NCBI GenBank assembly: GCA_002269645.1
Contig: NIVC01002024.1
Location: 62,001-126,000 of the forward strand
Length of the DNA stretch: 64,000 nt
Reading direction: 5' to 3'
From: Macrostomum lignano
Taxonomy: Eukaryota
This document shows, piece by piece, positions 1-30,400 of the stretch; positions within the stretch are counted from its first letter, which is position 1; the number at the start of each line of letters is the position of its first letter. A program made the position numbers and the translations under genes. A model generated the notes under the pieces. It was given only the letters and a program-made list of their open reading frames with translations, had not been told where the DNA came from and searched no databases.

Positions 1-3000
1 GCTTCTGTCACCGTGACGGGCTTCAATGTGACCTGTCTTGATGTAGAGTGGCCAGCCTCCAATACGTCAGGTGTGACATACAACCTGACCTGTGGCTCCG
101 ATTCTCCGATTGATGCCGGCCGAGAGCTGAAAGGCAGTTGCTGCGGTCTGCAGTCAGGAGAGAACCACACGGCAACTGTTGTTGTGGTTAAGGCTGGCTT
201 TAACAACAGCTCTCCCGCCAGTATAGTGGGACAGACTCGTGAGTTTTTACACCCGATGTTTCTGAGTTTCTTGCCTCAGCGCCGGGGCATTGTTTGATTC
301 GAATTGTGCACTGAAACCCAGCAAAGGCTTTGCAGTTAGTCTGTAGAAATCGAATTTGAAAATCAAGGAAAGTTTCAAGCAGTGCAATTAGGGCACAAGA
401 GTGCATTCTATTCACTCACCTTTACTCATAAGTAGTTTTTGTGACGTGGCTTCTTCGATGTTTTTGTGAGGCTTCCGACGTGCATGTAACTTACTGTCAT
501 TTTACAGAGCACTTATGAGGGGTTAATTATTGACCGGAAAGTCCTAACTTACTACTTTCAGTAGCGTAGTGATCTTTTAAGTTTTTTTTGCAACAGCTAT
601 CCAACAATAGCGCACGATTTATTGTGCTCTAACTGACCTTATTTGTAACACGAATTGCAACCCGGTTTTAGTGGTGTCACCTGTGGCTTCTGTCACCGTG
701 ACGAACTCCAATGTGACCTGTCTTGATGTAGAGTGGCCAGCCTCCAATGCATCGGATGTGACATACGAGCTTGACTGTGGGTCAGGTGCAATTAAAGTGG
801 ACCCAGGAACCTCAGGCTCCTGCTGCGGTCTGCAGTCAGGAGAGAACCACACGGCAACTGTTGTTGTGGTTAAGGCTGGCTTTAACAACAGCTCTCCCGC
901 CAGTACAGTGGGACAGACTCGTGAGTTCAGCAGCTCTGTGTGCTCAGATGAGCTGCTCTGAGTCAGATGGCTTTGTTGCTGTGATGCTTTGCGGCTTTTA
1001 GGGATGTTGATTGACAGGGCTGAAGTTTGATTTTTCTGAATTAAATTCCTCTGCAAATCGGAGTGCTTGATGCTTAATTGCTCAGCTGACGCAGGCCTTT
1101 AATTCGACTGTGATGCTTTGCGGCTTTTAGGGATGTTGATTGACGGGGTTGAGCTTTAACTGACGGCTTTGATTTTTATAAATTACTCGTAAATTCCTCT
1201 GCAAAGCAGAATGTAAGTTTACGACAGTTTTTGCCAGGTAGCGAGTTCACCCATGCTTAATAGCTGATCTGACGCAGGCTTGTAATTCAATTTTCAAAGT
1301 GTTGAAAAAATTGCTGTGGATGTGGTGCAACTTTAAGGCCAATACAAAAGCCTTTTTACTGCAGTGATGTCACCAATGTAGAGATATTTTATGTTTCAGT
1401 TGCGTGGCCTTTAACACAAATTTTCAAATTTTACTGCTTTCCATCGCTCTGATTTTGCAGCAGAAATGATTGCAGCAGCTGATGCAGCTTGAGCGATAGC
1501 TCCGCCTTTGCCTTTTTTCTGAGTTTAAAATTTTTGTAGAGTTGTTTTGGTACAGTTTGCATCCGATAGTTATTAACTTACTATACCGGAACTGAAGACA
1601 CTGCAGTCAGTGAATAAGTATGAGCTGTATTAACTATCGCTGTATTTAAAAATGCACATTTGTACACCTTGTTTGATTTGCTTCCAGTGGTCGCTCCCGT
1701 GGCTTCTGTCACCGTGACGGGCTTCAATGTGACCTGTCTTGATGCAGAGTGGCCAGCCTCCAATACGTCAGGTGTGACATACAACCTGACCTGTGGCTCC
1801 GATTCTCCGATTGATGCCGGCCGAGAGCTGAAAGGCAGTTGCTGCGGTCTGCAGTCAGGAGAGAACCACACGGCAACTGTTGTTGTGGTTAAGGCTGGCT
1901 TTAACAACAGCTCTCCCGCCAGTATAGTGGGACAGACTCGTGAGTTTTCACACCCGATGTTTCTGAGTTTCTTGCCTCAGCGCCGGGGCATTGTTTGATT
2001 CGAATTGTGCACTGAAACCCAGCAAAGGCTTTGCAGTTAGTCTGTAGAAATCGAATTTGAAAATCAAGGAAAGTTTCAAGCAGTGCAATTAGGGCACAAG
2101 AGTGCATTCTATTCACTCACCTTTACTCATAAGTAGTTTTTGTGACGTGGCTTCTTCGATGTTTTTGTGAGGCTTCCGACGTGCATGTAACTATTGTCAT
2201 TTTACAGAGCACTTATGAGGGGTTAATTATTGACCGGAAAGTCCTAACTTACTACTTTCAGTAGCGTAGTGATCTTTTAAGTTTTTTTTGCAACAGCTAT
2301 CCAACAATAGCGCACGATTTATTGTGCTCTAACTGACCTTATTTGTAACACGAATTGCAACCCGGTTTTAGTGGTGTCACCTGTGGCTTCTGTCACCGTG
2401 ACGAACTCCAATGTGACCTGTCTTGATGTAGAGTGGCCAGCCTCCAATACATCGGATGTGACATACGAGCTTGACTGTGGGTCAGGTGCAATTAAAGTGG
2501 ACCCAGGAACCTCAGGCTCCTGCTGCGGTCTGCAGTCAGGAGAGAACCACACAGCAACTGTTGTTGTGGTTAAGGCTGGCTTTAACAACAGCTCTCCCGC
2601 CAGTACAGTGGGACAGACTCGTGAGTTCAGCAGCTCTGTGTGCTCAGATGAGCTGCTCTGAGTCAGATGGCTTTGTTGCTGTGATGCTTTGCGGCTTTTA
2701 GGGATGTTGATTGACAGGGCTGAAGTTTGATTTTTCTGAATTAAATTCCTCTGCAAATCGGAGTGCTTGATGCTTAATTGCTCAGCTGACGCAGGCCTTT
2801 AATTCGACTGTGATGCTTTGCGGCTTTTAGGGATGTTGATTGACGGGGTTGAGCTTTAACTGACGGCTTTGATTTTTATAAATTACTCGTAAATTCCTCC
2901 GCAAAGCAGAATGTAAGTTTACGACAGTTTTTGCCAGGTAGCGAGTTCACCCATGCTTAATAGCTGATCTGACGCAGGCTTGTAATTCAATTTTCAAAGT

Positions 3001-6000
3001 GTTGAAAAAATTGCTGTGGATGTGGTGCAACTTTAAGGCCAATACAAAAGCCTTTTTACTGCAGTGATGTCACCAATGTAGAGATATTTTATGTTTCAGT
3101 TGCGTGGCCTTTAACACAAATTTTCAAATTTTACTGCTTTCCATCGCTCTGATTTTGCAGCAGAAATGATTGCAGCAGCTGATGCAGCTTGAGCGATAGC
3201 TCCGCCTTTGCCTTTTTTCTGAGTTTAAAATTTTTGTAGAGTTGTTTTGGTACAGTTTGCATCCGATAGTTATTAACTTACTATACCGGAACTGAAGACA
3301 CTGCAGTCAGTGAATAAGTATGAGCTGTATTAACTATCGCTGTATTTAAAAATGCACATTTGTACACCTTGTTTGATTTGCTTCCAGTGGTCGCTCCCGT
3401 GGCTTCTGTCACCGTGACGGGCTTCAATGTGACCTGTCTTGATGTAGAGTGGCCAGCCTCCAATACGTCAGGTGTGACATACAACCTGACCTGTGGCTCC
3501 GATTCTCCGATTGATGCCGGCCGAGAGCTGAAAGGCAGTTGCTGCGGTCTGCAGTCAGGAGAGAACCACACGGCAACTGTTGTTGTGGTTAAGGCTGGCT
3601 TTAACAACAGCTCTCCCGCCAGTATAGTGGGACAGACTCGTGAGTTTTCACACCCGATGTTTCTGAGTTTCTTGCCTCAGCGCCGGGGCATTGTTTGATT
3701 CGAATTGTGCACTGAAACCCAGCAAAGGCTTTGCAGTTAGTCTGTAGAAATCGAATTTGAAAATCAAGGAAAGTTTCAAGCAGTGCAATTAGGGCACAAG
3801 AGTGCATTCTATTCACTCACCTTTACTCATAAGTAGTTTTTGTGACGTGGCTTCTTCGATGTTTTTGTGAGGCTTCCGACGTGCATGTAACTATTGTCAT
3901 TTTACAGAGCACTTATGAGGGGTTAATTATTGACCGGAAAGTCCTAACTTACTACTTTCAGTAGCGTAGTGATCTTTTAAGTTTTTTTTGCAACAGCTAT
4001 CCAACAATAGCGCACGATTTATTGTGCTCTAACTGACCTTATTTGTAACACGAATTGCAACCCGGTTTTAGTGGTGTCACCTGTGGCTTCTGTCACCGTG
4101 ACGAACTCCAATGTGACCTGTCTTGATGTAGAGTGGCCAGCCTCCAATACATCGGATGTGACATACGAGCTTGACTGTGGGTCAGGTGCAATTAAAGTGG
4201 ACCCAGGAACCTCAGGCTCCTGCTGCGGTCTGCAGTCAGGAGAGAACCACACAGCAACTGTTGTTGTGGTTAAGGCTGGCTTTAACAACAGCTCTCCCGC
4301 CAGTACAGTGGGACAGACTCGTGAGTTCAGCAGCTCTGTGTGCTCAGATGAGCTGCTCTGAGTCAGATGGCTTTGTTGCTGTGATGCTTTGCGGCTTTTA
4401 GGGATGTTGATTGACAGGGCTGAAGTTTGATTTTTCTGAATTAAATTCCTCTGCAAATCGGAGTGCTTGATGCTTAATTGCTCAGCTGACGCAGGCCTTT
4501 AATTCGACTGTGATGCTTTGCGGCTTTTAGGGATGTTGATTGACGGGGTTGAGCTTTAACTGACGGCTTTGATTTTTATAAATTACTCGTAAATTCCTCC
4601 GCAAAGCAGAATGTAAGTTTACGACAGTTTTTGCCAGGTAGCGAGTTCACCCATGCTTAATAGCTGATCTGACGCAGGCTTGTAATTCAATTTTCAAAGT
4701 GTTGAAAAAATTGCTGTGGATGTGGTGCAACTTTAAGGCCAATACAAAAGCCTTTTTACTGCAGTGATGTCACCAATGTAGAGATATTTTATGTTTCAGT
4801 TGCGTGGCCTTTAACACAAATTTTCAAATTTTACTGCTTTCCATCGCTCTGATTTTGCAGCAGAAATGATTGCAGCAGCTGATGCAGCTTGAGCGATAGC
4901 TCCGCCTTTGCCTTTTTTCTGAGTTTAAAATTTTTGTAGAGTTGTTTTGGTACAGTTTGCATCCGATAGTTATTAACTTACTATACCGGAACTGAAGACA
5001 CTGCAGTCAGTGAATAAGTATGAGCTGTATTAACTATCGCTGTATTTAAAAATGCACATTTGTACACCTTGTTTGATTTGCTTCCAGTGGTCGCTCCCGT
5101 GGCTTCTGTCACCGTGACGGGCTTCAATGTGACCTGTCTTGATGTAGAGTGGCCAGCCTCCAATACGTCAGGTGTGACATACAACCTGACCTGTGGCTCC
5201 GATTCTCCGATTGATGCCGGCCGAGAGCTGAAAGGCAGTTGCTGCGGTCTGCAGTCAGGAGAGAACCACACGGCAACTGTTGTTGTGGTTAAGGCTGGCT
5301 TTAACAACAGCTCTCCCGCCAGTATAGTGGGACAGACTCGTGAGTTTTCACACCCGATGTTTCTGAGTTTCTTGCCTCAGCGCCGGGGCATTGTTTGATT
5401 CGAATTGTGCACTGAAACCCAGCAAAGGCTTTGCAGTTAGTCTGTAGAAATCGAATTTGAAAATCAAGGAAAGTTTCAAGCAGTGCAATTAGGGCACAAG
5501 AGTGCATTCTATTCACTCACCTTTACTCATAAGTAGTTTTTGTGACGTGGCTTCTTCGATGTTTTTGTGAGGCTTCCGACGTGCATGTAACTATTGTCAT
5601 TTTACAGAGCACTTATGAGGGGTTAATTATTGACCGGAAAGTCCTAACTTACTACTTTCAGTAGCGTAGTGATCTTTTAAGTTTTTTTTGCAACAGCTAT
5701 CCAACAATAGCGCACGATTTATTGTGCTCTAACTGACCTTATTTGTAACACGAATTGCAACCCGGTTTTAGTGGTGTCACCTGTGGCTTCTGTCACCGTG
5801 ACGAACTCCAATGTGACCTGTCTTGATGTAGAGTGGCCAGCCTCCAATACATCGGATGTGACATACGAGCTTGACTGTGGGTCAGGTGCAATTAAAGTGG
5901 ACCCAGGAACCTCAGGCTCCTGCTGCGGTCTGCAGTCAGGAGAGAACCACACAGCAACTGTTGTTGTGGTTAAGGCTGGCTTTAACAACAGCTCTCCCGC

Positions 6001-7039
6001 CAGTACAGTGGGACAGACTCGTGAGTTCAGCAGCTCTGTGTGCTCAGATGAGCTGCTCTGAGTCAGATGGCTTTGTTGCTGTGATGCTTTGCGGCTTTTA
6101 GGGATGTTGATTGACAGGGCTGAAGTTTGATTTTTCTGAATTAAATTCCTCTGCAAATCGGAGTGCTTGATGCTTAATTGCTCAGCTGACGCAGGCCTTT
6201 AATTCGACTGTGATGCTTTGCGGCTTTTAGGGATGTTGATTGACGGGGTTGAGCTTTAACTGACGGCTTTGATTTTTATAAATTACTCGTAAATTCCTCC
6301 GCAAAGCAGAATGTAAGTTTACGACAGTTTTTGCCAGGTAGCGAGTTCACCCATGCTTAATAGCTGATCTGACGCAGGCTTGTAATTCAATTTTCAAAGT
6401 GTTGAAAAAATTGCTGTGGATGTGGTGCAACTTTAAGGCCAATACAAAAGCCTTTTTACTGCAGTGATGTCACCAATGTAGAGATATTTTATGTTTCAGT
6501 TGCGTGGCCTTTAACACAAATTTTCAAATTTTACTGCTTTCCATCGCTCTGATTTTGCAGCAGAAATGATTGCAGCAGCTGATGCAGCTTGAGCGATAGC
6601 TCCGCCTTTGCCTTTTTTCTGAGTTTAAAATTTTTGTAGAGTTGTTTTGGTACAGTTTGCATCCGATAGTTATTAACTTACTATACCGGAACTGAAGACA
6701 CTGCAGTCAGTGAATAAGTATGAGCTGTATTAACTATCGCTGTATTTAAAAATGCACATTTGTACACCTTGTTTGATTTGCTTCCAGTGGTCGCTCCCGT
6801 GGCTTCTGTCACCGTGACGGGCTTCAATGTGACCTGTCTTGATGTAGAGTGGCCAGCCTCCAATACGTCAGGTGTGACATACAACCTGACCTGTGGCTCC
6901 GATTCTCCGATTGATGCCGGCCGAGAGCTGAAAGGCAGTTGCTGCGGTCTGCAGTCAGGAGAGAACCACACAGCAACTGTTGTTGTGGTTAAGGCTGGCT
7001 TTAACAACAGCTCTCCCGCCAGTATAGTGGGACAGACTC
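1..7039 (+). repeat. Tandem array of a 1700-bp unit (just over 4 units visible), each carrying two FN3-like cassette exons (A 252 nt, B 249 nt) plus their introns
   Basis: ORFs recur every 1700 bp (first A-to-A interval 1701); copies differ at only a few positions; every exon has AG/GT and phase 1 on both sides. Confidence 0.97.
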
Positions 7040-10000
7040 GTGAGTGCAGTAGCTCAATCTTTTTTCCCCATTTCTTGCTTATTTGAAATAAAATGCATCC
7101 GTTAATTTATTCGCAATCTGCTTATTTTAGTCCTGTCTCCCGTGGCCAACGCGTCCATCGCTTGGAGTTCAACTTACGAGAGCGTGCACGTGAGCTGGAA
7201 TGCCTCCAGCAGTCGCGACGTGCAGTACTCAGTTACCATCGGCTCAAATACCGCAAAACAGCTGAACGAGACCAGCACGAACCAAACTAGCTTAAGCCCC
7301 GGCTCAGTGCAGAGTATTAAAATCATTGTTAAGAAGGCCGGCTTCGCGGATTCATTGCCGGCGATGTCGAAGGCTCTGACTAGTAAGATGCGGGTTTAAA
7401 TAAAAGTTTGAGCGAACAGGTCACGCTATAAAGCATTTAATCAGAGAAGCTGTGTGTGGATTTACGATTCAAATATTTTAATACGGAGTTAACACAACAT
7501 TTCAGAGCCCCGTCTCAACGCCAGCAGCGCCACATTTAGCACCGACTTTACGCTGGACGCCGTAACGCTGGCCAACTCTGCTCTAAGCGCAGTTTGGAAT
7601 AACACCGTCGCAATTGGTGCAGACTTTCTGAGCATCGATTTGAAATCTTTAAAGCTTAATATGAATATGAGAGAGACATTTGATAAGTTGAAAGCAGAGT
7701 TTAAAGGCGAATACGCCTATTCGGATAATGTAACCATTGAAGTGGTGGCTGTTGCCGAAAAAGACGGTTTGGTACAAAACAGCTCCGGAACTTATACGGT
7801 TGTACAGCGTACAGGTGAGTGGCTGATGCTTGCAGGTGCAATTTATAATCGGGGCTTGCAATCTGTTTAGGGTTGCCATACTCGTATTGGGTGCTTTTAG
7901 GCTGTGTGAGTAAGTATTTTCTTCAGTAGTTTTGGCTCTTTTGTAGTTCATAGTCTTGTGAAACCTGAGGATTGTGAACTTTAGAATTCTCATATGGTTG
8001 CTGTTTGTAGAGTTTAGGGTTGGTGGAATTCGGGGTTTGTGGAGTTGGGGTTTGTGGAATCGGGGGTTTGTGAACTTGGTGTTTGGGGAGGTTCGGGGTT
8101 TGTGGATTTTGTGTTTGTGGAGTCAGGGGTTTGTGAAGTTAGGGTTTGTGGAATTGTGGCTTTGTGGAGTTGGGGCTTTGTGGAGTTGGGGGTTTGTGGA
8201 ATTGAGGGTTTGTGATTTTGGAGTTTGGGAAGTTAAGGGTTTGTGGAGTTGGGGTTTGGGGAGTTAGGGTTGTGGAGTTGGGGTTTGGGGAGTTAGGGTT
8301 GTGGAGTTGGGGTTTGGGGAGTTGAAGGTTTGTGGCGTTGGGGTTTGTGGAGTTAAGGGTTGTGGAGTTGGGGTTTGTGGAATTTGTGTTTTTGAATTTG
8401 GGGTTTGTAGAGATGGGGGTTTGTGGAGTTGGGGTTTGGGGAGTTGAAGGTTTGTGGCGTTGGGGTTTGTGGAGTTAAGGGTTGTGGAGTTGGGGTTTGT
8501 GGAGTTGGGGGTTTGTGGAGTTGGGGGTTTGTGGAGTTAAGGGTTGTGGAGTTGGGGTTTGTGGAATTTGTGTTTTTGAATTTGGGGTTTGTAGAGATGG
8601 GGGTTTGTGAAGTTGGGGTTTGTGGAATTTGTGTTTGTGAAGTTGGAGTTTGTGGAGTTGGGGGTTTGTGGAGTTGGAAGTTTGTGGAGTTGTGGCTTGC
8701 GAAACCTGCCCTTTCACAAGACTGGCATTTTATCTTCATAATTTGATTGTCAATCAATTTCAGATCCTAGCGCGCCTAATGCGACTTGGACATCTGTGAA
8801 TAGTAGAAGCCTCAAAGTCAAACTGGAGGCCACCTCGCATTCTGAGCTGCTCATTGCACAACTTAGCAATATTGCTGGCAACGTCTTATTCAATAAATCT
8901 TGCCCTCGATGGATGCAGTCCTGCGAACTCGAGTTCCAGCCGCTGTCGCCCCACACGAACTACTCGCTTAATGTCAACGCTGCCTATTACGAGCGAACGT
9001 CGCCAGCGGTAGAGCCGAGACAGCAGGAGACTCTACAGGATTCACCAGCGGCTCCGCAAGATGCTCGGGTCACCAACCTCAGCGCCGACTCGCTAAAGCT
9101 GTCTTGGTCGCCTCCGTCCGAGCCCAACGGTGTCATCATTGCCTACACCGTGCGCTGCTTCGCTAACGGCATCGGCTCCGGAAACGACTCCGTGCCGAAG
9201 AACGTCACACTTAACGCCGGCACTAACACTACCTTTAACGCCACCATTAACGACTTGTCTCCCGGAGTCCAGTTCGACTGCAGCGTCACCGCGTGGACCT
9301 CGGCGGGCGAGAGTCCGTCCAGCCCTAAAACTAATCTGACTTTGCTCGACGATCTGGCACCGAGCAAGTCACTGGACGAGGTGCCTCGGTTTGCCAGCCG
9401 CCGTGGGCAAGGCGTGGTTTCGCTGTGGAAGAGTTTCCAGTTTAGCCGAGGCCTGATATTTGAGTACGTCCTGCGGCTGGATAAGATCAACGTTAGCAGC
9501 GGTAACAGCCCCATTAGCTGCTCTTTTGCGGCTAGAATAGTGTGCACCGACTGTTCGCGAAGTCAACTCCCCGCGTTGAGTGAACTGGACGGCTGCTCAA
9601 ATGTGACAAATTCGAGCTTCAGCTTCAGCCAGACTAACGGCCAGGACCTGCAGGTGGACACTGGCGACATTCTGGAGCCGTACACGCCTTACCGAATCAC
9701 CGTGTGGCCGGTGAATCGAGCCGGTCCAGGTCCGAACAGCACCAGCTCCGTTGCCCGAACACTTGAGCAGCCGAGCGATCCAGTTAGCTCGCCAGTTCTG
9801 ACGCCTGACAAGCGCCAGATTGACCTGAAATTCGGCCTGCCAGCCGTGACTCGAGGCCGCATCATGGCCTACACTGTTAGCTTAAGTGCCAGCAATGGAA
9901 GCTGTATTGGGGGCTACGTGATGGACTTGAATTTGACCTGCGAGCTGTCACCGCCGGATAAGTGCAACGTTAGCGACACAGTCAACCAGCTGCTCTCTGG

Positions 10001-13000
10001 CTGTTCGCCGATCTCCAACATCAGCTCGTCGGCACCCATCAAGCTGCTTGGCCTGTGGCCCTGGGCCAACTACAGCGTGTCCGTGACGCCAGTCAGCCAG
10101 ACTCTGGCCGGACAGACTTGGAGTCGCACCGATCGAACTCTGCCGGACACGCCTGATCCACCTGAAGGTCTCAATGTGAAGGAAATAGGAGACACATTCG
10201 CTGTGCTGGGCTGGACTCCGCCTACTATGCTGAATGGCGTGTTCCAGCAGTACTGGTTCAGGATTGAAACAGGCTCTGTTAAAAGTCTTTGGACTTTGCT
10301 GCCTGACTATTCTTTAGAGGTAAGTAGAACAGCAGCATTAAACACCCGTGAGGGCGGAGCCAATTGGGCCAGATGTGCAACCGACAGCGCATCTGAAGGC
10401 TGCGTTCGGCTGTTCAGTCCAAGGACTGGAGGGGGGGGGGTCGCCACACACAGCCTCAATTACCACAGCTAATGTACATTATCCAGTCCACTGAAATGTA
10501 CATCGCTGCTTTAGGCTGGAATTCCGGAAAGGCAATAAAATTGGGGCAGGGGGGATAGTTGGATGGTTTAAAGCTAATAAATCAGTAAGAACCAAAAAAT
10601 GAGCCTTGGCTAATACATGAAAATGCTTGTTTAACTTACTACTGATCTGTAAGTAGTTTATACGCGAATGTGCTGAGTGGCCCATCTAGTTATTCTAGTA
10701 TCTGTGCCTAATTCTGGTACCCAGTTTACAGCTGGGTGAACTGAAGCAATTCAGAGTTAAGTGTCTTGCTCAAGGACACAAAATGTTTCGGGTGGGACTG
10801 GGAATCGAACCCCCGGCCTTCAAGTCGTGAGTCCGACGCTCTAACCACTAGGCTACAACTCTCAGAGTGTGCGAGCAAGGTCAGGTCAGCTGTTCAAGTT
10901 TAAGATGAGAACCTCGCATTCATTCAACATCTCTCTTCAGACCTACCGGGCGACCCCCCTCACTCAGTGCGGTAACTACAACTTTAAGCTACTCACGGAG
11001 AACAATTACGGCAACAGCAGCGAGGCTTCCGTCCCCAGCAAAACAAAAATTGGCGATCTAAGCGCCAGTGTGGTTGTTCGCAACGTTACCGCCATAGAAA
11101 CAACTCATGATACTGTTAAGCTGACCTGGAAAGCAGTTACTCACGGCTTATGCGATGTCAGTTACAACGTAGTTCGGAACTCCTCCACTCCTAAAACGGA
11201 AACTGGTGCAACCCACCTGGCACCTGATCTGCTACCCTACACTTGGTACCATTTTACTATCGAAGCTAAAGTGGAATTCAATGGAGCAACGGAAACTGCC
11301 GCAGTGACGCCATCTGCTGGTATTGTGATTCGAACCGACCCGTACAAAGCCACCAAGCCGAGAGGCTTTGCCTGTTCACCTGTGCCTAATCAGCTCAATA
11401 AGGTGCGATGCACCTGGCAGCAGCCTGATCGCTTCAACGGCGTACCGATCCGCTACGAACTACAGCTGCTCAACACTCCGCCAGGTGTTAAAGTATTCGA
11501 GACTTTGCCTTATAATGCTTCTACGCTAGGCCTCACCATAACCAGCTTGGCCTATATTAAGCCTGAAGATCAGCTCAGATTCGGAGTGCTGCTGGTTAAC
11601 ACGCCTGGTGGAGAAATAAAAGGCTTTGAGGAACAGATTAGCACTCCGGTGGAAATTACACCTGGCAAGGCCTACAGTGTGCCAGGTGTTAATATTCAAG
11701 TGAGTGCGGGGAATGGGACTGACGTGTGGGTCAGAATCACCCCATCGCACTCCGACATCACCCACCTCACTTCAAAATCACCCACCTCACTCTGGCATAA
11801 CCCACCTCACTCCAGAATCACCCACCTCACTCTGGCATAACCCACCTCATTCCAGCATCACCCACCTCACTCTGGCATCACCCCACCTCACCCCAGCATC
11901 ACTCCACCTCACTCCAGCATCACCCACCTCACTCCAGAATCACCCACCTCACTCCAGAATCACCCATCTCACTCCAGAATCACCCACCTCACTCCAGAAT
12001 CACCCACCTCACTCCAGAATCACCCACCTCACTCCAGAATCACCTAACTCACTCCAGAATCACCCACCTCACTCCAGAATCACCCACCTCACTCCAGAAT
12101 CACCCACCTCACTCCAGAATCACCCACCTCACTCCAGAATCACCCACCTCACTCCAGAATCACCCACCTCACTCCAGAATCACCCACCTCACTCCGGCAT
12201 CACCCACCTCACTCCGGCATCACCCCACCTCACCCACCTACCCAGGACGGCGCCAACGTAGAACAAATCGGTCACGAAAAGATCAAAATCAACTTGGAAG
12301 GCTTCTCCAAAGCATTCAACGACAGCTACGGCAAAATTCGGTACTGCCGATTGCTAGTTGGCCAAGACAAGCTCAGCGACGCCGAGTGGACTCTGGACGG
12401 AGATCGCAATTACGCTGGCAGCGACCGGGGCTACAAACGGCCGTACGCGTTCAACGTCAGCTGCGGCTCGGCACCCGTCAACACGGAGCCGTTCCGCGCT
12501 TCATCAGCGTCGAGGCTTGCCGCGCCATCATCTGTCGTCGACGAAACGACGGTGATCATCGGCAGCGGCTCGGAGGATTGCGTCGGCGAGTGCAACGGTC
12601 CGCTGACGTACGAGCAGCCCTACAGAGTGTACTTGGTAGCTTGCACTAGTGCGGGCTGCAGCCTCTCCAATGCCAACATCAAATTCACCACCGGGTTCAA
12701 CCACTTGCTTCGCCAGCTCATCGGTGGCATTGTTGGCGGGGTGCTGGGCGCGCTGCTGGTGGTTGCCATCGTGGTTCTACTCATTAAACGAATGGACAAG
12801 TGCAAGGGCGGGTGAGTCATTGAGCTCTGATCGTAGGGGGTTGAAATTACAGTTGTTGGATGGATTCAGGCGTGAGCAGGAGTGAGCTGGGTGTCTGTGA
12901 AGTGAGCTGGGTGTCTGTGGAGTGAGCTGGGTGTCTGTGAAGTGAGCTGGGTGTCTGTGGAGTGAGCTGGGTGTCTGTGAAGTGAGCTGGGTGTCTGTGA

Positions 13001-14901
13001 AGTGAGCTGGGTGTCTGTGAAGTGAGCTGGGTGTCTGTGAAGTGAGCTGGGTGTCTGTGAAGTGAGCTGGGTGTCTGTGAAGTGAGCTGGGTGTCTGTGA
13101 AGTGAGCTGGGTGTCTGTGAAGTGAGCTTAGTGTCTGCGAAGTGAGCTGGGTGTCTGTAAAGTGAGCTGGGTGTCTGTAAAGTGAGCTGGGTGTCTGTGA
13201 AGTGAGCTGGGTGTCTGTGAAGTGAGCTGGGTGTCTGTGAAGTGAGCTGGGTGTCTGTGAAGTGAGCTGGGTGTCTGTGGAGTGAGCTGGGTGTCTGTGG
13301 AGTGAGCTGGGTGTCTGTGAAGTGAGCTGGGTGTCTGCAGAGTGAGTTGGGTGTCTGCGGAGTGAACTGGGTGTCTGCGGAGTGAGCTGGGTGTTTGTGA
13401 AGTGAGCTATATATCTAATTATTTATCACGTGTCCATATTTCAGTTCGAAACCCCCGGAAAACGCCAATGGGTTTTCTAACACAAACAGGTAAGTTTCCA
13501 CTAACATTTTAATTTTGCTCGGAATTTGGTGTTGTATTACTAAAGTAAAATTTAAATGCACAATCTTCATTTACAAACAACTGTATAACACGTTTAAAGG
13601 TTTTAAATGTTGTTGCTACGCTCGTATACGAGTATGTTATCTCTTTGTTACAAGCTATTTGCGAATTGGCTGGCCTCCCCACCCCACTGGCTGGTCTCCT
13701 TGCCCCATTGGCTGGCCTCCTCACCTCATTGGCTGGCCTCCTCACCCCATTGGCTGCCTCGTCACCTCATTTGCTGGTCTCCTCACCTTATTGGCTGACC
13801 TCCTCACCCCATTAGCTGCCTCCTCACCCCATTAGCTGCCTCCTCACCTCATTGGCTGGCCTCCTTGCCCCATTGGCTGGCCTCCTCACCTTATTGGCTG
13901 ACCTCCTCACCCCATTAGCTGCCTCCTCACCTCATTGGCTGGTCTCCTTGCCCCATTGGCTGGCCTCCTCACCCCACTGGCTGGCCTCCTCACCCCACTG
14001 GCTGGCTTCCTCACCCAATTGGCTGGCCTCCCCACCCCACTGGCTGGCCTCCTCACCCAATTGGCTGGCCTCCCCACCCTATTGGCTGCCACCTCACCTC
14101 ATTGGCTGGCCTCCTCACCTCATTGACCACTTTGTGGAATTATTGCATTGAAGCGCGTTTTTATTGCTTCTATTTTAGACCGGAGTGGTATGAAAGTGGC
14201 TTCTGGTTAGTTTGCTGAAGCACATCTGGAATATTTTCCCAGCTTCTCTAGTTTGCCAGCTTCTGCAGTACAGGCTGTTTTCTGCGGGCACAATTCATAG
14301 CTCTAATCATTTTGTACTCAAGTGTAAATCTAATTGAGTTTGCGCTTAATGTGTAATAATGTGTAATAATAATAGTGAGTTTGTGACTGGTCAATTCACT
14401 ACAAATGGATATTTTTTGGCTAATTCCAATACGTGTGTTTGAACTTATTAAAGGATTTTACTATTGACTGTCTATTTTAAGGCTCAGTTTAGGCCAAAAA
14501 TGCATAATAATTTTTCTGTTTCTTAGTATCAGTTCTCTTGTCTCTTGCCGCAGCTACAGCTAAATCTATAGAATGAAAGCCTTCAGAAACGACACTCAAA
14601 GAGCTCTTAGTCTCTATTTGCTTCTAATTATCCTCTGTTTCCCTGACAAGTTCTTCGTGTCCTTTAACAGGGTTTCACTGTCTGACACGCCAGCCAATCA
14701 GCAGGCAGATTGGTGAGTCAGATTAATTAAAATCACTAGCCAATCGGCTGGCCCCCCACCCATTGGCTGACCGCATACTTGGATCATGATTGTCCTTGGT
14801 CATAACTAGTTAGCTAGATTATAATATTTGAAGTATTCGCTGCATTTCCTCCTCCCTGCCCCTGGGGGAGGCTGAGAGACCATTGAAGGCCAAGGCCAAA
14901 G

Positions 14902-15149: not shown

Positions 15150-18100
15150 ATATCTATCTCTCTATCTATCTATTTATTTATCTGTCTGTTTTGGTGTCTG
15201 TGTCTGTCTGTATGTCTGTTTGACCTTCACCTGATATCTTTCTAGCGCCAGGCGTAAAACGGCACTAGCGCAGTGATTTATTGGTACTGCAAATTTTTTG
15301 TATATAAATAATTTTTTGGCAACCATTTCTAGTTTTTTGCTACTTAGATCTTTAACTAACTGAAATAATAACATTTTATCTTCATTCACCGGTTTGTAGT
15401 GCAATGTTACTAATTAGTTTGTAGTTTAAAATGAATATTTCAGAGCCCCTCATGGTTAGTTGATTTGATTTTAAAACATAATGCTTTTAATTGATTGACT
15501 GTCACTCGATCACGGTTTAAACTGTGAATGTGAAATTCACATTCTGTGAATTGCTGACCGACTCGTTGGTACAAAAACACCTGCGACAATCCAAAGAAGT
15601 TCCATAGAAATCAGTCCAAAGCTTTCATGAAATTTGGTTTAAAAGAGTTTTATAGTAAATCTATTACATGACAATATTAAAATCCGCGAAAAATTTAATA
15701 GAAATTGAAAAAAACCGCGGAAATTCCATAGAAAACGGTTAAAATCCGCGAAATATTTCATAGAAATTGAAAAAAACGCGGAAATTCCATAGAAAACGGT
15801 TAAAATCCGCGAAATATTTCATAGAAATTGAAAAAAACGCGGAAATTCCATAGAAAACGGTTAAAATTCGCGAAATATTTCATGGAAATTGAAAAAAAAC
15901 GCGGAAATTCCATAGAAAACGATGAAAACTCGGTCGGAACATTTCATAGAAATCTGACGCAAACTTCGCCTTCCAATCCGCAGGTCCGAATCGCCGATTC
16001 CTCGCGCAGTTGCCATCGCCGATTTCCGTCGCTACGTCGGCTTCATGCTGAGAGACAGCGAGCTGGAAGTTCACCGACAGTTCGAAGAGATTAAGGAGGC
16101 CGCTTTGGAACGCGAGCAGAAAGATTTCAGCCTCAACGTAGCCACGGCCGACTGCAACAGGGCAAAGAACCGGTACACGGACATCCTGCCCTACGACCAT
16201 ACTCGGGTTGTTCTCGAGTCAAGCTACGAAGGACCTGGCCACGCTCCGGACGACTACATTAATGCCAACTACATCAAGTAAGACAGATTTAATTTGCTCT
16301 AATAATTTTTACTGCTCTGATTTCTGCTAAAGTCGGTCGAATGCTTTTGCGGCGTGGGTCAGGGTTGTGCGAGTGGGTCAGGGTTGTGCGAGTGGGTCAG
16401 GGTTGTGCAAGTGGGTCAGGGTTGTGCGAGTGGGTCAGGGTTGTGCAAGTGGGTCAGGGTTGTGCGAGTGGGTCAGGGTTGTGCAAGTGGGTCAGGGTTG
16501 TGCGAGTGGGTCAGGGTTGTGCAAGTGGGTCAGGGTTGTGCGAGTGGGTCAGGGTTGTGCGAGTGGGTCAGGGTTGTGCGAGTGGGTCAGGGTTGTGCAA
16601 GTGGGTCAGGGTTGTGCGAGTGGGTCAGGATTGTGCGAGTGGGTCAGGGTTGTGCGAGTGGGTCAGAGTTGTGCAAGTGGATCAGGGTTGTGCGAGTGGG
16701 TCAGGGTTGTGCAAGTGGGTCAGGGTTGTGCGAGTGGGTCAGTGTTGTGCGAGTGGGTCAGGGTTGTGCGAGTGGGTCAGGGTTGTGCAAGTGGGTCAGG
16801 GTTGTGCGAGTGGGTCAGGATTGTGCGAGTGGGTCAGGGTTGTGCGAGTGGGTCAGAGTTGTGCAAGTGGATCAGGGTTGTGCGAGTGGGTCAGGGTTGT
16901 GCGAGTGGGTCAGGGTTGTGCGAGTGGGTCAGTGTTGTGCAAGTGGGTCAGGGTTGTGCGAGTGGGTCAGGGTTGTGCGAGTGGGTCAGTGTTGTGCAAG
17001 TGGGTCAGGGTTGTGCGAGTGGGTCAGGGTTGTGCGAATGGGTCATAATGATTCAGGTGTGTCACAATGAGAAGGCGGGGCATGATGAGGAATTGGAGAG
17101 GAGAGTCATGATGGAAAAGTGAGTCATGATGGAGAAGTGAGTCATGATGGAGAGGTGAGTCATGATGGGAAAGTGAGTCATGATGGGAAAGTAAGTCATG
17201 ATGGGAAAGTGAGTCATGATGGGAAAGTAAGTCATGATGGGAAAGTAAGTCATGATGGAAAGTGAGTCATGATGGGAAAGTGGGTCATGATGGTAAAGTG
17301 AGTCATGACGGGAAAGTGAGTCATAATGGGAAAGTGAGTCATGACGGGAAAGTGAGTCGTGGTTTTAAAACGGTTAGTTAAGGAGTCGTATCGTGGAGGG
17401 TAAAAATAGGTCAAATAACAAACTGTAGAACATTCGTACAAAATAGCAAACACAAAAAAATCTGCTACTTACTACTGATACAAAACTGTGCCAATTGAAT
17501 TACAGGGGCCTGGATCGCGAGCGCGAGTTCATAGCCAGCCAGGGCCCAATCCAGGGCACCATTGACGATCACTGGCGCATGATCTACCAGCACAAGGTGA
17601 CGCTGATCCTCACGCTCACCCAGTGCCAAGAGGGCATGAAGAGAAAGTCGGAGCGCTATTGGCCAGAGATTGTTGGCCAGTGCGAGACCTACGATGAGAT
17701 CAAAGTTTTCCTTGAGAGCGAGAGCGAGATGGGATCCTACACTGTGCGCAGGATGTCTGTCACCTGCTCTACTGACAGGTCGGTACTCCTGTTTGTGATT
17801 ATTTGGGATATGAAGAATAGGATCGTGCCAGAGTCGCTGCAGAATCGCTGAATTGGTCTAAAGCGCATCCGCGTCACTTAATGAATTAGGATCGCTACAC
17901 ATAAAGTCTACTACACACGACTATTGGAAGAATTTTTGCGAATATTTATTAACAACCCTCCAATCTCCATAGAAACCAGACGGAGCCGCTTCAGGTGGTG
18001 CAGCTCTTCTACCTGGGCTGGGCTGACTACAACGTGCCGAATGTCGACGACCTCGCCGACTTCCTCGCCCAGATGCGCAGCTACGCGCCGAAGTTGAGGC

Positions 18101-21100
18101 GAAGCGACGACGAGCCGCCGATTCTCGTGCACTGCAGCGCCGGGGTCGGACGGACCGGCACCCTGATCGCGCTGGACATCCTGGTGCGCTCGCTGGAGCT
18201 GCGCGGCGCCAAAACCATCAACGTGTTTGAGACGGTCATGCAGCTGCGGGCCTGCCGCAAACTCATGGTGCAGACCAAGGTGAGGGTTTGGGGTCACGGT
18301 GCAGACCAAGGTGAGGGTTTGGGGTCATGGTGCAGACCAAGGTGAGGGTTTGGGGTCATGGTGCAGACCAAGGTGAGGGTTTGGGGTCATGGTGCAGACC
18401 AAGGTGAGGGTTTGGGGTCATGGTGCAGACCAAGGTGAGGGGTTGGGGTCACGGTGCAGACCAAGGTGAGGGTTGTGGGTCACGGTGCAGACCAAGGTGA
18501 GGGTTTATTTGGGGTCATGGTGCAGACCAAGGTGAGGGTTTATTTGGGGTCATGGTGCAGACCAAGGTGAGGGTTTGGGGTCATGGTGCAGACCAAGGTG
18601 AGGGTTTGGGGTCATGGTGCAGACCAAGGTGAGGGTTTATTTGGGGTCACGGTGCAGACCAAGGTGAGGGTTTGGGGTCACGGTGCAGACCAAGGTGAGG
18701 GTTTATTTGGGGTCACGGTGCAGACCAAGGTGAGGGTTTGGGGTCACGGTGCAGACCAAGGTGAGGGTTTATTTGGGGTCATGGTGCAGACCAAGGTGAG
18801 GGTTTGGGGTCATGGTGCAGACCAAGGTGAGGGTTTGGGGTCATGGTGCAGACCAAGGTGAGGGTTTATTTGGGGTCATCATGGTGCAGACCAAGGTGAG
18901 GGTTTGGGGTCATGGTGCAGACCAAGGTGAGGGTTTGGGGTCATGGTGCAGACCAAGGTGAGGGTTTATTTGGGGTCATCATGGTGCAGACCAAGGTGAG
19001 GGTTTGGGGTCATGGTGCAGACCAGGGTGAGGGTTTGGGGTCACGGTGCAGACCAAGGTGAGGGTTTATTTGGAGTCATGGTGCAGACCAAGGTGAGGGT
19101 TTGGGGTCATGGTGCAGACCAAGGTGAGGGTTTATTTGGGGTCATGGTGCAGACCAAGGTGAGGGTTTATTTGGGGTCATGGTGCAGACCAAGGTGAGGG
19201 TTTATTTGGGGTCATGGTGCAGACCAAGGTGAGGGTTTGGGGTCATGGTGCAGACCAAGGTGAGGGTTTGGGGTCATGGTGCAGACCAAGGTGAGGGTTT
19301 ATTTGGGGTCATGGTGCAGACCAAGGTGAGGGTTTGGGGTCATGGTGCAGACCAAGGTGAGGGTTTATTTATGGTCATGGTGCAGACCAAGGTGAGGGTT
19401 TATTTGGGGTCATGGTGCAGACCAAGGTGAGGGTTTATTTGGGGTCATGGTGCAGACCAAGGTGAGGGTTTATTTGGGGTCATGGTGCAGATCAAGGTGA
19501 GGGTTTGGGGTCATGAAGAGGTCATAGAGGATGAGTGAAATTATGAAGGTCATAGGATGGAATGGGGTCATTGAATGTGGAAATTAACATCCGATGGTCA
19601 TGAGAAGGTAAAGAAGATCATGAGAGGGTGGGAAGGGTCATGAGAGGGTGGAAAGGGTCGTGAGAGGGTGGAAAGGGTCATGAGAGGGTGCAAAGGAAAA
19701 TTTCATGAGAGGGTGGAAAGGGTCATGAGAGGGTGTAACTGTAAAGTGTCATGAGAGGGTCATGAGAGTGTGTAACTGTAAAGTGTCATGAGAGGGTCAT
19801 GAGAGGGTGTAACTGTAAAGTGTCATGAGAGGGTCATGAGAGGGTGTAACTGTAAAGTGTCATGAGAGGGTCATGAGAGGGTGTAACTGTAAAGTGTCAT
19901 GAGAGGGTCATGAGAGGATAGATCAAATCTGGGTGTTGGTCAACCCTGAACTTGCCAATTCACACCCTCTCACAGGGCCAGCTGGCTTTCATTTATCGCT
20001 TTATGATAAACTACCTGGATTCGCATAACTACTTGGAGCCAATTGACGGTCCAAATTCAGGTAAAGTTGGCGTCGGTGACTTTTTATTATTGTTTCATGT
20101 AATGCGACTGCTTGTAATAAAATCTTTCTTTCAGGAGTATTGCAATTTCCTATGCATGTACTGTTTCATAAGTGTTCATCAACTCACATGGGTGATCACC
20201 AACTGTCACATGGGTGATCACCAACTGTCACATGGGTGATCACCAACTGTCACATGGGTGATCACCAACTGTCACATGGGTGATCACCAACTGTCACATG
20301 GGTGTTCATTAACTGTCTCATAGGTGTTCACCAGCTGTCTCATAGGTGTTCACCAACTGTCACATGGGTGTTCACCAACTGTCACATAGGTGTTCACCAA
20401 CTGTCACATGAGTGTTCACCAACTGTCACATGGGTGTTCACCAACTGTCACATAGGTGTTCACCAACTGTCTCATAGGTGTTCACCAACTGTCACATGGG
20501 TGATCACCAACTGTCACATGGGTGCTCACCAACTGTCACATGGGTGATCACCAACTCACATGGGTGATCACCAACTGTCACATGGGTGCTCACCAACTGT
20601 CACATGGGTGATCACCAACTCACATGGGTGATCACCAACTGTCACATGGGTGCTCACCAACTGTCACATGGGTGATCACCAACTGTCACATGGGTGATCA
20701 CCAACTGTCACATGGGTGCTCACCAACTGTCACATGGGTGATCACCAACTCACATGGGTGATCACCAACTGTCACATGGGTGCTCACCAACTGTCACATT
20801 GGTGATCACCAACTGTCACATGGGTGATCACCAACTGTCACATGGGTGCTCACCAACTGTCACATGGGTGATCACCAACTCACATGGGTGATCACCAACT
20901 GTCACATGGGTGCTCACCAACTGTCACATGGGTGATCACCAACTGTCACATGGGTGATCACCAACTGTCACATGGGTGATCACCAACTGTCACATGGGTG
21001 ATCACCAACTGTCACATGGGTGATCACCAACTGTCACATGGGTGTTCATTAACTGTCTCATAGGTGTTCACCAGCTGTCTCATAGGTGTTCACCAACTGT

Positions 21101-26790: not shown

Positions 26791-27417
26791 AAAGCTTAGA
26801 TAAAGTTTAGCAATCAGCGAGAGTCAGTGCCTACTGATGCGGGACATTAATAATAATAATAGCTATTTAGAGAGTAAAAGACAGACTGTATCGTACAGCA
26901 GCTGCCAACAGCAGCAAACTAAAGGCCACCTTAAACGCTGCAAGTCACTGGAAAATATATGCATGCATACGCAAAGTACAAAGCGCATCCTTGATCAATT
27001 GTAGTCATGATTTACTTGTTTTCATTAAACCTTACTCTCAGCTCACAATTAATAATACTGAAATTAATTATTAAATATTTTACATGTACGCATGCGCAGG
27101 TAATTAGAAAGCATATAAACACATGTAAGCCGGTTCAATCAAGATCAGGCTGGGTAAGGTTCACATACACAAGGATCGCATACGCATGCCAAACCGGAAA
27201 CCCGAGAGAGTGTGTGAAACGAGCGCGCACAGTGTATTTACATTATTTTATGTAAATAACGCTCGCAGATCTGTACTGCAATCTCGAAGGGACAACGTAC
27301 GCACATGCAAAAACATATATTGAAGCGGTGGCAACAAGCTCACCAAGTTAAAATAACTATACACACAGTAAGTCCATGAGATTATATTCTTCTTCGATCC
27401 CATTAATAGCCGATGAG

Positions 27418-30400
27418 ATGAGTAAAGGTATTGCTATTTTGCTAGCCATCATAGCGAGCTTGGTGCTGGCTTCTCTGGAAAATCCAACCAGTGAGCAGTC
27501 TAGGCCTAGTTCAACTGCCGCTTCAACTGCCGCTTCAACTGCCTCTACAACTGCTGCTTCAACTGCCTCTACAACTGCCGCTTCAACTGCTTCTACAACT
27601 GCCGCTTCAACTGCCTCTACAACTGCCGCTTCAACTGCTTCTACAACTACCGCTTCAACTGCCTCTACAACTGCCGCTTCAACTGCTTCTACAACTACCG
27701 CTTCAACTGCCTCTACAACTGCCGCTTCAACTGCTGCTTCAACTGCCTCTACAACTAACGCTTCAACTGCCGCTTCAACTGCCGCTTCAACTGCCGCTTC
27801 AACTACCGCTTCAACTGCCGCTTTAACAGCCTCTACAACTGCCGCTTCAACTGCCTCTACAACTGCCGTTTCAACTGCCTCTACAACTACCGCTTCAACT
27901 GCCGCTTCAACTGCCTCTACAACTGCCGCTTCAACTGCCTCTACAACTACCGCTTCAACTGCCGCTTCAACTGCCTCTACAACTGCCGCTTCAACTGCCT
28001 CTACAACTACCGCTTCAACTGCCGCTTCAACTACCGCTTCAACTGCCGCTTTAACAGCCTCTACAACTGCCGCTTCAACTGCCTCTACAACTGCCGTTTC
28101 AACTGCCTCTACAACTGCCGCTTCAACTGCCTCTACAGCTGCCTCTACAACTGCTACAACAGCCAACTTGACAAAGCAGACTACGACAAATTCCCGCACA
28201 ACTCAACCCTCAACTACAACTACAGCTGCAACTACCGTAACAACAGCTGGCAGTGCAGTGCAAACCACGCCAGAACCAGTAGAACTTCCTAATCTAAAAG
28301 TGCAGGTGAATCGTACAACAACACAATTGATAGAGATTGTTTGGTCCTGGCCAGACAATGTCAGTCAGGTGGTGAAACATTTAAATCTGACATATTTTGT
28401 CAACTGCGACTCCAGAGCTGCTGCAGAGGAGACACAATCAATGAGGCACACTTGTTATTACAATTCAAGTGGAGAAGTCTACAACATCACCATTAGAGCC
28501 GTTGCTGATGGTCCCGATTATAGGGAAGGTCCAACGCAGTGGCTGCTGGCAACAACAAGTGAGTAAAATATGGATGGGCAATAGATGGACCCTATGAAAC
28601 AAACTATGTTCAGCTGTAGATAAAAATCAAATTCTCTACTAGATTCAAGTAAGATAAGAAAAGCTGTTTTGGTCGTCTTAGATTCGTGTACCAAATGCTT
28701 TACCACACAAGTGATAATGTCAACAATTTTATTGTAAACTTTATTAAACAAGCTTTCCATAAAATTATATGTTTAGATTCGTAATAATTTGCCAGCAATT
28801 TTTAAAGCTGGAAAGGCTTAAGCTTGTGCTTCAGAGTTTTTAGTGTGCAACACTCTCTTAGCTCGTAGTGTTAACCTTATGGATAGAAAAGTTTGCTGGC
28901 GCCAACATCTGTTTATCAGTGGCATTCCATTGGTAAGGCCATTAAATACACTTTGTATAAAAATGGTACTTCAATTGGTCAATTAGCTATGAGTTTATGA
29001 AATATTGTTTTTAAAAGTGACCCACAATAATTACGGTAGGCTAAGAATATTTTGCCATAGAGTGAGGCTATACTGCACTCGTTCACTCTCAATCACTCGA
29101 TCACAAACGAGGCATTCAAATAAATTGTTTGTTAAAGTACAATAAAATTCGCTGTTGTAAAATTTCGACATAGTGAAAATTCGGGTTTATGGAACGAAGC
29201 TATCAGTATATACATGTAATTATCTTGACTTACTTGACTTAGCTGCAGGGCGGTCCGAAGACGCAGCGGGGAGGCGAGCGTCGCCCATTCCGCTAATCCC
29301 GGAAAGGCCCGCAAAGGCTAGGGCGCGGGGCCGGTCAGGGAGGTCTGCCGGTCCTGTCTGCAGCGTTGCCTTCGGTGGGAAAGACGGAGGCTCGCTTGGT
29401 GGCCCGGAGAAACCGGGTGAGCCGTGGGATGTTCTCGGGCCGGCAAACGTCGTCCAGGGACGGGTTGGGCCCGAGGTGGTTGAGCCGGTCTCGGTTGAAG
29501 GCCGGGCAGTAGCAGACGAAGTGCTTGGCGTCTTCGTTCTCGAGGTTGCATTAAGGGCAGAGTTCGCTCCGGCGAACGCTTCGGAGGAAACAGTGCCTGG
29601 CAAAGCAACCGAGACCTGTGAAGGTCATAGTGAGAGCGCGGATATCTTTTCGATTTTGGTTCAAAAGGATTCTCCGCAGCTTGAGGGATGGATTGGGCAC
29701 TGCCGTACGAGATTGTCGGCAGTTGGAGACACCATCCCATCTGCGCAAGTGCAGGTTAATGACAGTGGCGGGGATGGGGGCCAGGGGCACGGGGCCAAGG
29801 AGCGAGCCGGAACAGCCCGCCTTAGCGAGGGAGTCGGCGAGCTCGTTACCTTTGAAGCCAGCGTGTCCTGGGATCCACGTAAGCCGGACGGTGTTCCTCC
29901 GAGCCAGCTTGTTGAGCTGCCCGATACAGTCGCGGACTGTTCAGGAGTTCGTAGTGGTGTGACACAGGGCCTGCAAAGCGGCCTGGCTGTCAGGGTGGAA
30001 GAATATTCTTCTGTCCTTGAAGTCCCTGCAGTGGAGCTCAGCTGCACAGGAGCTGATGGCAAGGACTTCATTCTGGAAGACGCTGGAGAGTCTGCCAGTG
30101 TGTTGGGCGTGAGTGACGATCACGCGTCCGTTGATAAGGACGCAGACTCCAAAGCCGGATAAACCGTCTTTGGAGGATCCGTCAGTAAAGCAGTGAACCT
30201 CCTGAGGGGCCCAGCTGTCGTTGGCGTTCTCCCTAGAGGGGATAGTGACCTTGAAGCGTTGGTAGTGAAGTTTAGCGCTTGTGAAGTTTAGCGCTTGTGA
30301 AGTTCAGCGCTTGTGAAGTTCAGCGCTTGTGAAGTTTAGCGCTTGTGAAGTTTAGCGCTTGTGAAGTTTAGCGCTTGTGAAGTTTAGCGCTTGTGAAGTT

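Follow-up and report, generated by a model that had tools for sequence, protein, structure and literature searches.

The 64,000-nt stretch of Macrostomum lignano DNA analysed here (contig NIVC01002024.1 of assembly GCA_002269645.1, forward-strand positions 62,001 to 126,000; hereafter the window) carries a gene for a receptor-type protein tyrosine phosphatase with a single catalytic domain, part of whose predicted ectodomain is encoded by an array of FN3 exons. Splicing 13 plus-strand exons yielded a model of 1,705 codons with zero stops, the downstream part of which is 100% identical to the UniRef entry A0A1I8H7P9 (‘Protein-tyrosine-phosphatase, Macrostomum lignano’), and the annotated model P0044 (1,772 aa), placed on the same contig, represents this gene. 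The encoded order is a signal peptide, a short Thr/Pro-rich stretch, an FN3 domain termed Z, the array, the exons C–F of putative FN3 type, a transmembrane segment and one tyrosine-phosphatase domain, in which the HCX5R active-site motif is present; the Pfam family Y_phosphatase is found on the annotated product, and the model stops after this one phosphatase domain. The phosphatase ‘WPD’ loop (window 17953–18342, plus strand) reads W-A-D, with the general-acid Asp retained and the Pro substituted. Judged by this predicted layout, with the transmembrane segment preceding the catalytic domain, the protein has the architecture of R3-type receptor phosphatases, R3 membership being a likeness in layout.

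Within window positions 1–7039, a 1,700-bp cassette is repeated 4.5 times, each unit consisting of exon A (252 nt), intron a (432 nt), exon B (249 nt) and intron b (767 nt), such that the exons follow one another as A1 B1 A2 B2 A3 B3 A4 B4 A5. All array exons have AG/GT borders, phase 1-1 and an open frame. The initial annotation of this DNA had placed the array at 672–7039; the array itself was confirmed, but that span omits the first array exon, A1 (window 1–238), which comes after the signal-peptide/Z-domain exon in the annotated model.

Differences between the two exon types are concentrated in one central part of the exon. We divided the exon by alignment column into a 12-nt head, a 5′ frame (columns 13–79), a central patch with indels (columns 80–152) and a 3′ frame (column 153 to the donor site). 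A3 and B3 differ at 41 of 252 columns, comprising 4 of 12 nt in the head, 3 of 67 in the 5′ frame, where they form one GGCTTC/AACTCC island, 32 of 73 in the patch, where identity is below 60%, and 2 of 100 in the 3′ frame, namely a fixed ATA/ACA difference and a polymorphic CAC[G/A]G site. The two-breakpoint max-chi2 statistic for this clustering was 64.8, a value reached by none of 300 permutations. Synonymous divergence was likewise not uniform along the exon: where A and B codons encode the same residue, a synonymous difference was present at 8 of 13 patch codons compared to 1 of 52 in the frames (Fisher P = 2e-6), and the proportion of synonymous differences (pS) was 0.5–0.7 in the patch, depending on the alignment, versus ~0–0.04 in the frames (0 of 17 synonymous sites in the 5′ frame and 1 of 24.5 in the 3′ frame). 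A and B are thereby related by significantly clustered mosaic divergence that includes synonymous sites, as in concerted evolution. Long shared stretches accompany this pattern, with GTGGCTTCTGTCACCGTGACG found in all 8 complete array exons and the 40-mer CAATGTGACC...CTCCAAT in 8 of 9 exons, the exception being A2, which has a private T>C change. The introns between the exons are unrelated, the local alignment score of intron a against intron b (14) showing no similarity above that of shuffled controls (11.9 ± 1.4, maximum 16). These results bear out the initial annotation where it described stretches shared by A and B down to synonymous sites, one central patch holding most of the differences, and unrelated introns; its description of the exons as identical at both ends holds for the frames, which are near-identical, but not for the first 12 nt, which differ at 4 sites, nor fully for the 3′ 100 nt, with their one fixed ATA/ACA difference. 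The codon of strand G at columns 237–239 (window 3624–3626 in A3 and 4305–4307 in B3) encodes five residues among the 19 array exons of this locus and its homeolog (see below), as ATA (I), ACA (T), AGA (R), AAA (K) and GTA (V), all changes being nonsynonymous.

A profile search of 1.84 billion representatives returned only M. lignano relatives, the next-best matches being unrelated FN3-like repeats (E = 1e-17 or weaker), and led to contig NIVC01005002.1 (L001); a single A exon had no matches in a 5.8-billion-protein set. Over its first 11.9 kb, L001 aligns collinearly, at 97.6% identity, with the DNA upstream of the window gene, and since this fits the 2.6% overall single-nucleotide polymorphism variation reported as subgenome divergence in the neopolyploid M. 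lignano (PMC10733133), we take L001 to be the homeologous copy of the same gene. The homeologous copies differ by 2.4–4%; L001 a-type and b-type introns are 95.6–97.2% identical to those of the window, with intron a at 96–97%. Within the window array, in comparison, units 3 and 4 are identical over 1,700 nt, unit 2 is one base off and unit 1 six or seven, and because the four units of this head-to-tail, in-frame exon-plus-intron repeat differ at only 0–7 sites, amplification of the cassette is far younger than the 2.4–4% divergence of the homeologous copies. Intron b holds an internal ~130-nt direct duplication (window 4381–4415 and 4510–4544, at equal offsets in each copy), also present in the L001 b-type introns.

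The L001 array consists of 10 exons rather than 9, in a different order and composition, the comparison being one of two homeologs and not of alleles. Exons x1, x3, x6 and x8 are of type A and x2, x5 and x7 of type B; x4 and x9 are hybrids, and x10 joins a B head to an A body. The hybrids x4 and x9 are B-type up to column 103 and A-type from column 110, with intron a on either side, as would be expected if a B exon and an A exon had undergone unequal crossover; they have private sites in common and therefore derive from one event that was later duplicated. Upstream of x10 lies an a-type intron next to its B head, unlike the terminal exon A5 of the window, which has intron b and an A head upstream. 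Exon x2 combines a B head and a B patch with A-type states at columns 31, 33, 34 and 46, which we read as a non-crossover conversion tract of 16–67 nt. Two patch types plus one hybrid form, rather than many variant cassettes, make up the 19 array exons of the two loci, and in a partial upstream copy and a further locus, L003, the last exons are exclusively A-type. Exons x7 (L001 18379–18625) and x8 (L001 19392–19641) contain frame-breaking 1–2-nt deletions, one of those in x7 lying within an A run, and represent either long-read consensus errors or real pseudo-exons. Older, diverged a-type introns with 75% and 68% identity to intron a occur beside x10 (L001 20335–20785) and x7 (L001 16189–18378), so that the L001 array mixes old and young units.

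Recombination tests covered these 19 array exons, 15 of them distinct. Sites separating A from B across both loci made up 29 of the 37 variable patch sites and none of the 28 variable frame sites (Fisher P = 1.7e-11); among the latter, one was fixed by locus across both types (column 41) and three were polymorphic in both types (columns 46, 185 and 207). The four-gamete test failed for 244 of 990 informative site pairs, with incompatibility rising with distance, and frame sites 41, 46, 181, 185 and 207 failed it against patch type. A statistic similar to the pairwise homoplasy index (PHI-like) was 0.120, compared to 0.246 on permutation, with none of 5000 permutations as low, and the Hudson–Kaplan minimum was Rm = 7 recombination events within 252 nt. 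Phylogenetic incompatibility, recombinant copies and polymorphism common to both types, all expected under concerted evolution, are present together. The pS between A and B frames within a locus (0–0.04) compares with 0.03–0.08 between same-type exons of the two loci, both being small counts. The max-chi2, PHI-like and Rm results all indicate recombination, and together with the frame mosaic in L001, the distribution of type-separating sites, the five frame sites failing the four-gamete test, the visible hybrids and the x2 tract they uphold the proposal of the initial annotation that the exons convert one another. Recombination between A and B exons, as short-tract conversion and unequal crossover, is on these sequence patterns strongly supported, and no other reading accounts for them. 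It is barely credible that the frames instead owe their identity to nucleotide-level constraint such as splicing enhancers or RNA structure: identity does extend exactly to the donor site, and exons must be recognised within a repetitive array, but the frames hold 28 variable sites among the 15 distinct exons, including synonymous ones, with states shuffled between types, and hybrid exons whose introns have switched could not arise from constraint. Given this variation in the frames and its reshuffling between types, we regard such constraint as effectively excluded as the cause of frame identity.

One polymorphic frame site bears on the timing of exchange. The base at CAC[G/A]G (column 185) is G in A1–A4 and B1 (window 171, 853, 1872, 3572 and 5272) and A in B2–B4 and A5 (window 2553, 4253, 5953 and 6972); it is also A in all 10 L001 exons and, as read by eye, in the L001-like last exon of L003. 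Since G is absent from all L001 exons, it is derived, having arisen in the window locus after the homeolog split. Decay of a CpG dinucleotide was considered as the source of the CACGG/CACAG difference and rejected, as all outgroup exons have A and the change to G thus created the CpG. In B1 the G is flanked by B-type states at columns 152 and 238, and the simplest account of a derived G common to A1–A4 and B1 would be a single conversion tract, no longer than ~85 nt, that post-dates the homeolog split, in the direction A-to-B or B-to-A, with A5 and B2–B4 keeping the ancestral base. A second, independent and identical mutation at column 185 is a priori improbable, any given mutation having a chance of roughly 1 in 750. 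The initial annotation had reported that this site swaps between types, and the states it gave for A5 (A) and B1 (G) are correct; with G derived, however, they call for one transfer rather than two swaps. Its description of conversion as ongoing finds moderate support in this derived, post-split G common to A exons and B1.

The A/B split itself appears to be old, as suggested by the unrelated introns and the patch pS of 0.5–0.7, and comparison of the two homeologous loci dates both patch types to before their split. In the explanation that we favour, with a probability of about 0.78, two old paralogous FN3 exons, A and B, each of symmetric phase 1-1 and parted by unrelated introns, would have come to lie in one 1.7-kb cassette, which very recently expanded in the window locus to A-B-A-B-A-B-A-B-A, with unequal exchange or replication slippage as the presumed cause. 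Sequence has repeatedly passed between A and B exons by homologous recombination, both as short conversion tracts without crossover and as unequal crossovers with junctions inside exons. This recombination acts where the two are still alike, at columns 13–79 and from column 153 to the donor site, while two deep lineages are kept in the 12-nt head, in the central 73-nt patch and in the introns. The patch would persist mainly because its divergence (<60% identity, with indels) prevents heteroduplex formation, so that each frame is homogenised separately; such a passive barrier would be sufficient, although selection for two surface variants may add to it. Another origin for the mosaic, namely a recent duplication producing A and B, followed by replacement of patch, head and introns from a third, diverged FN3 exon, is very improbable: other diverged FN3 exons (Z and C) and several paralogous loci do lie nearby, but neither an A-type nor a B-type patch was found outside the arrays in the window, L001 or the sequence L002 (in which window position p corresponds to position p + 11844), both flanking introns and the head would all need replacement, and both types predate the homeolog split.

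Structure prediction places the patch on the protein. AlphaFold2 models of the A (A3) and B (B3) domains, each with seven strands, had predicted local distance difference test (pLDDT) scores of 91.8 and 90.9, and Foldseek matched them to FN3 domains (tenascin FN3 1ten, 10Fn3 monobodies) with template modelling scores of 0.81–0.87, as expected of a seven-strand FN3 sandwich. The conserved FN3 residues Trp of strand B and Tyr of strand C (W21 and Y31) are invariant in a 12-sequence alignment; Pfam gave on the exons only a sub-threshold Fn3_Dep-1_3rd match (23 bits, cut-off 26). Fold or profile support for FN3 applies to the A and B exons, with a precomputed fn3 hit on the annotated product as a whole; exons Z and C resemble A/B at only 25–36% sequence similarity, and E–F are called FN3 solely through the product-level fn3 hits. 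In the predicted models, the patch (residues 26–50) runs from the end of the BC loop through strand C, the CC′ loop, edge strand C′ and the C′E loop into the start of strand E, and would thus form an exposed surface segment rather than a single loop. Type A carries an extra N-L-T glycan sequon on strand C, where type B has E-L-D.

Selection, rather than a homology barrier, could also have kept the patches apart, if both surface variants (A glycosylated at N-L-T, B acidic with E-L-D, and with differing C′ strands) were needed and conversions crossing the patch were purged. Both patch types are indeed kept in both homeologs, mostly alternating; the patch lies on the exposed C face, CC′ loop, edge strand C′ and C′E loop; the A–B differences left in the frames are mostly nonsynonymous (4:1, 7:1, 9:1); and A-type paralogs vary in the C′ region. 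We nevertheless consider selection in place of a barrier unlikely, though not negligible. There are two types only, and between them the ratio of nonsynonymous to synonymous divergence (dN/dS) is below 1 (0.2–0.7), with a proportion of nonsynonymous differences (pN) of 0.32–0.38 against a pS of 0.5–0.7. Within types, between homeologs, the whole-exon pN/pS is ~0.7 for A and 1.4–2 for B, based on very few changes that are spread over the exon and not patch-specific. Variable residues among eight A-type copies are enriched in the patch only weakly and not significantly (10 of 25 positions, versus 15 of 58 elsewhere), and hybrids that break inside the patch persist and have been duplicated. Nothing in this analysis shows diversifying selection focused on the patch, in a sample that is small for site models. 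Accordingly, the claim of the initial annotation that conversion spares a variable loop, as in recognition receptors, was not sustained: the segment spans several structural elements, its two types diverge with dN/dS below 1, and x4 and x9, kept and duplicated, break within it, while a passive homology barrier explains its persistence equally well. Measured per segment, the contrast in synonymous divergence between frame and patch that it implied was found, but not a dN/dS above 1 in the patch; mapped on the predicted fold, the patch is at the surface and not buried, but is not one loop. More speculative still, and at slight odds, is a role of the array as a diversity-generating module, in which exchange would make new numbers, orders and hybrids of glycosylated and acidic FN3 variants, perhaps alternatively used, giving differing ectodomains across individuals or subgenomes for cell–cell or mate/self recognition in this hermaphroditic, sexually conflicted flatworm.

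Several points weigh against the favoured explanation, a recently amplified cassette with recombining frames and a patch retained as two old lineages. GC content at third codon positions (GC3) is not raised in the frames relative to the patch (0.56 for both in type A; 0.55 against 0.46 in type B), leaving no footprint of biased conversion; raised GC3 is supportive, not strictly defining, of conversion. The homologous stretches, at 67 and 100 nt, are short for efficient recombination, and with two loci a barrier and selection are indistinguishable. No annotated gene model contains a B exon or more than one array exon, all of them reading Z-A-C. Both P0044 and P0043 (PAA46194.1, on L001) hold such a single array exon, and that of P0043 is chimeric, fusing the 5′ part of x1 to the 3′ part of x10. 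The B-type patch was absent from every database protein found, and a B-A-B tri-domain query gave only further A-type paralogs, P0047 and P0048. The single-exon models look like repeat collapse during transcript assembly or a real haplotype with a one-exon array. All existing M. lignano models collapse the array to one exon, with the predicted ectodomain possibly ~670 residues short and the B-type domain missing from the M. lignano proteome. Finally, both loci come from one PacBio assembly, errors have been reported in assembly Mlig_3_7 (PMC10733133), and CACGG and other single-site states in near-identical repeats could be polishing artefacts. We consider it distinctly improbable that near-identical cassettes and frames were homogenised or mis-polished in the assembly, with the CACGG/CACAG ‘swap’ a consensus error: the indels in x7 and x8 are typical of long-read consensus errors and the 5′ end of L003 is indel-rich, but the mosaic is seen again, along with both patch types and the intron types, on two separate contigs whose arrays differ in composition, the same A-type exons are present in UniProt models that derive from the older ML2 assembly, and 1.7-kb units are readily spanned by long reads.

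Table 1 Features of the phosphatase gene in the window.
Feature	Window position	Strand	Remarks
Exon A1, first array exon	1–238	+	252 nt, beginning 14 nt before the window; window position 1 = L002 11845; phase 1-1, one FN3 domain
Intron a, copy 1	239–671	+	433 nt; GT...AG borders
Exon B1	672–920	+	249 nt, phase 1-1; derived G at 853, private G at 749
Intron b, copy 1	921–1687	+	767 nt
Exon A2	1688–1939	+	private T>C at 1745 (V>A)
Intron a, further copies	1940–2371, 3640–4071, 5340–5771	+	432 nt each
Exon B2	2372–2620	+	
Intron b, further copies	2621–3387, 4321–5087, 6021–6787	+	
Exon A3	3388–3639	+	head 3388–3399, 5′ frame 3400–3466, patch 3467–3539, 3′ frame 3540–3639
Exon B3	4072–4320	+	patch 4151–4220
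Exon A4	5088–5339	+	
Exon B4	5772–6020	+	
Exon A5, last array exon	6788–7039	+	ancestral A at 6972; followed by a different, terminal intron
Exon C	7131–7382	+	diverged FN3 exon, 30–36% amino-acid identity to A/B, phase 1-1
Exon D	7506–7814	+	part of spliced model
Exon E	8764–10319	+	long multi-FN3 exon; 100% match to UniRef A0A1I8H7P9
Exon F	10941–11699	+	part of spliced model
Catalytic-domain exons, span	15958–18342	+	open-frame segments 15958–16278, 17447–17848 and 17953–18342; borders approximate; HCX5R motif

A partial paralog lies upstream on the same strand (L002 534–8257, ~3.6–11.3 kb upstream of window position 1), and likewise in L001, in which a frameshifted last array exon of L001 type is followed by C′, D′, E′, F′ and a transmembrane exon; no phosphatase exons follow before the first exon of the window gene, which suggests either tandem segmental duplication or a truncated copy resembling a decoy. 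Downstream, window 27352–28563 (plus strand) holds the start of a second receptor-like gene, with the signal-peptide-like MSKGIAILLAIIASLVLASL, a Ser/Thr/Ala-rich region encoded by a 24-nt minisatellite (27510–28154) and then an FN3-like stretch weakly similar to exon A. Introns and flanks are dense with 12–66-nt minisatellites, for example at window 8003–8699, 11732–12233, 12881–13408, 16354–17045, 18263–19515 and 20172–21733, among many more; the 31-nt unit TCATGGTGCAGACCAAGGTGAGGGTTTGGGG at 18263–19515 occurs again at 38593–38805. A 375-aa open frame with reverse-transcriptase-like motifs (window 51353–52477, minus strand) is probably a retroelement fragment, and L003 carries an integrase (rve) gene at 28103–29077.

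Several known systems share parts of this organisation. R3-type phosphatases include PTPRJ/DEP-1, PTPRB, PTPRH, PTPRO and PTPRQ as well as Drosophila Ptp10D/Ptp4E, and like them the M. lignano protein combines a putatively FN3-based ectodomain, one transmembrane segment and one HCX5R catalytic domain, with array domains rich in N-glycan sequons. It is unlike the vertebrate members in sequence, the closest match beyond Macrostomum being a fish PTPRQ (E = 2e-25) with ~31% identity across 7% of the query, and in having W-A-D in place of WPD. Regional gene conversion in protocadherin clusters is reportedly treated by Noonan et al. 2004 (Genome Res 14:354). In the variable exons of protocadherins from fugu, zebrafish and human, where regional gene conversion has been described (PMC1852091), one part of the exon is, as in M. 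lignano, >99% nucleotide-identical including synonymous sites and another is diverged and paralog-defining, and the synonymous identity excluded purifying selection there (PMC1852091). Protocadherin units differ from the M. lignano array in that they serve separate transcripts as alternative first exons, exist in dozens of variants and show raised GC3 where converted; in M. lignano, two exon types stand in series within one gene, and two converted frames flank the old part without a GC3 signal.

The amplification of the cassette recalls another system, the kringle IV-2 (KIV-2) repeat of LPA, in which a multi-kilobase two-exon cassette with its introns is repeated head-to-tail in near-identical, in-phase copies whose number sets the number of domains. 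In both, a two-exon cassette plus introns is repeated with copies nearly identical down to the introns and exons in phase; the two KIV-2 exons, however, jointly encode one kringle and are not mutual paralogs, whereas the M. lignano exons are whole FN3 domains that appear to recombine with each other. The array also resembles Dscam clusters in its tandem duplicated exons, which specify parts of Ig-superfamily-like domains in a cell-surface receptor and combine a common framework with variable surface segments (PMC3236188), but Dscam has dozens of such exons, which are used in a mutually exclusive way and generate isoform diversity (PMC3236188), compared to two types and one hybrid form in M. 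lignano, with nothing showing alternative use. Taken together, the system combines regional gene conversion and unequal crossover with KIV-2-like cassette amplification, and is a new example in a flatworm receptor phosphatase rather than a new kind. Protocadherin, MHC, opsin and kringle repeats are established cases of this logic; what the M. lignano array offers is a compact and legible case, in which crossover products, a non-crossover tract, a derived shared variant and a recent amplification can be read within 20 kb of two homeologous loci.

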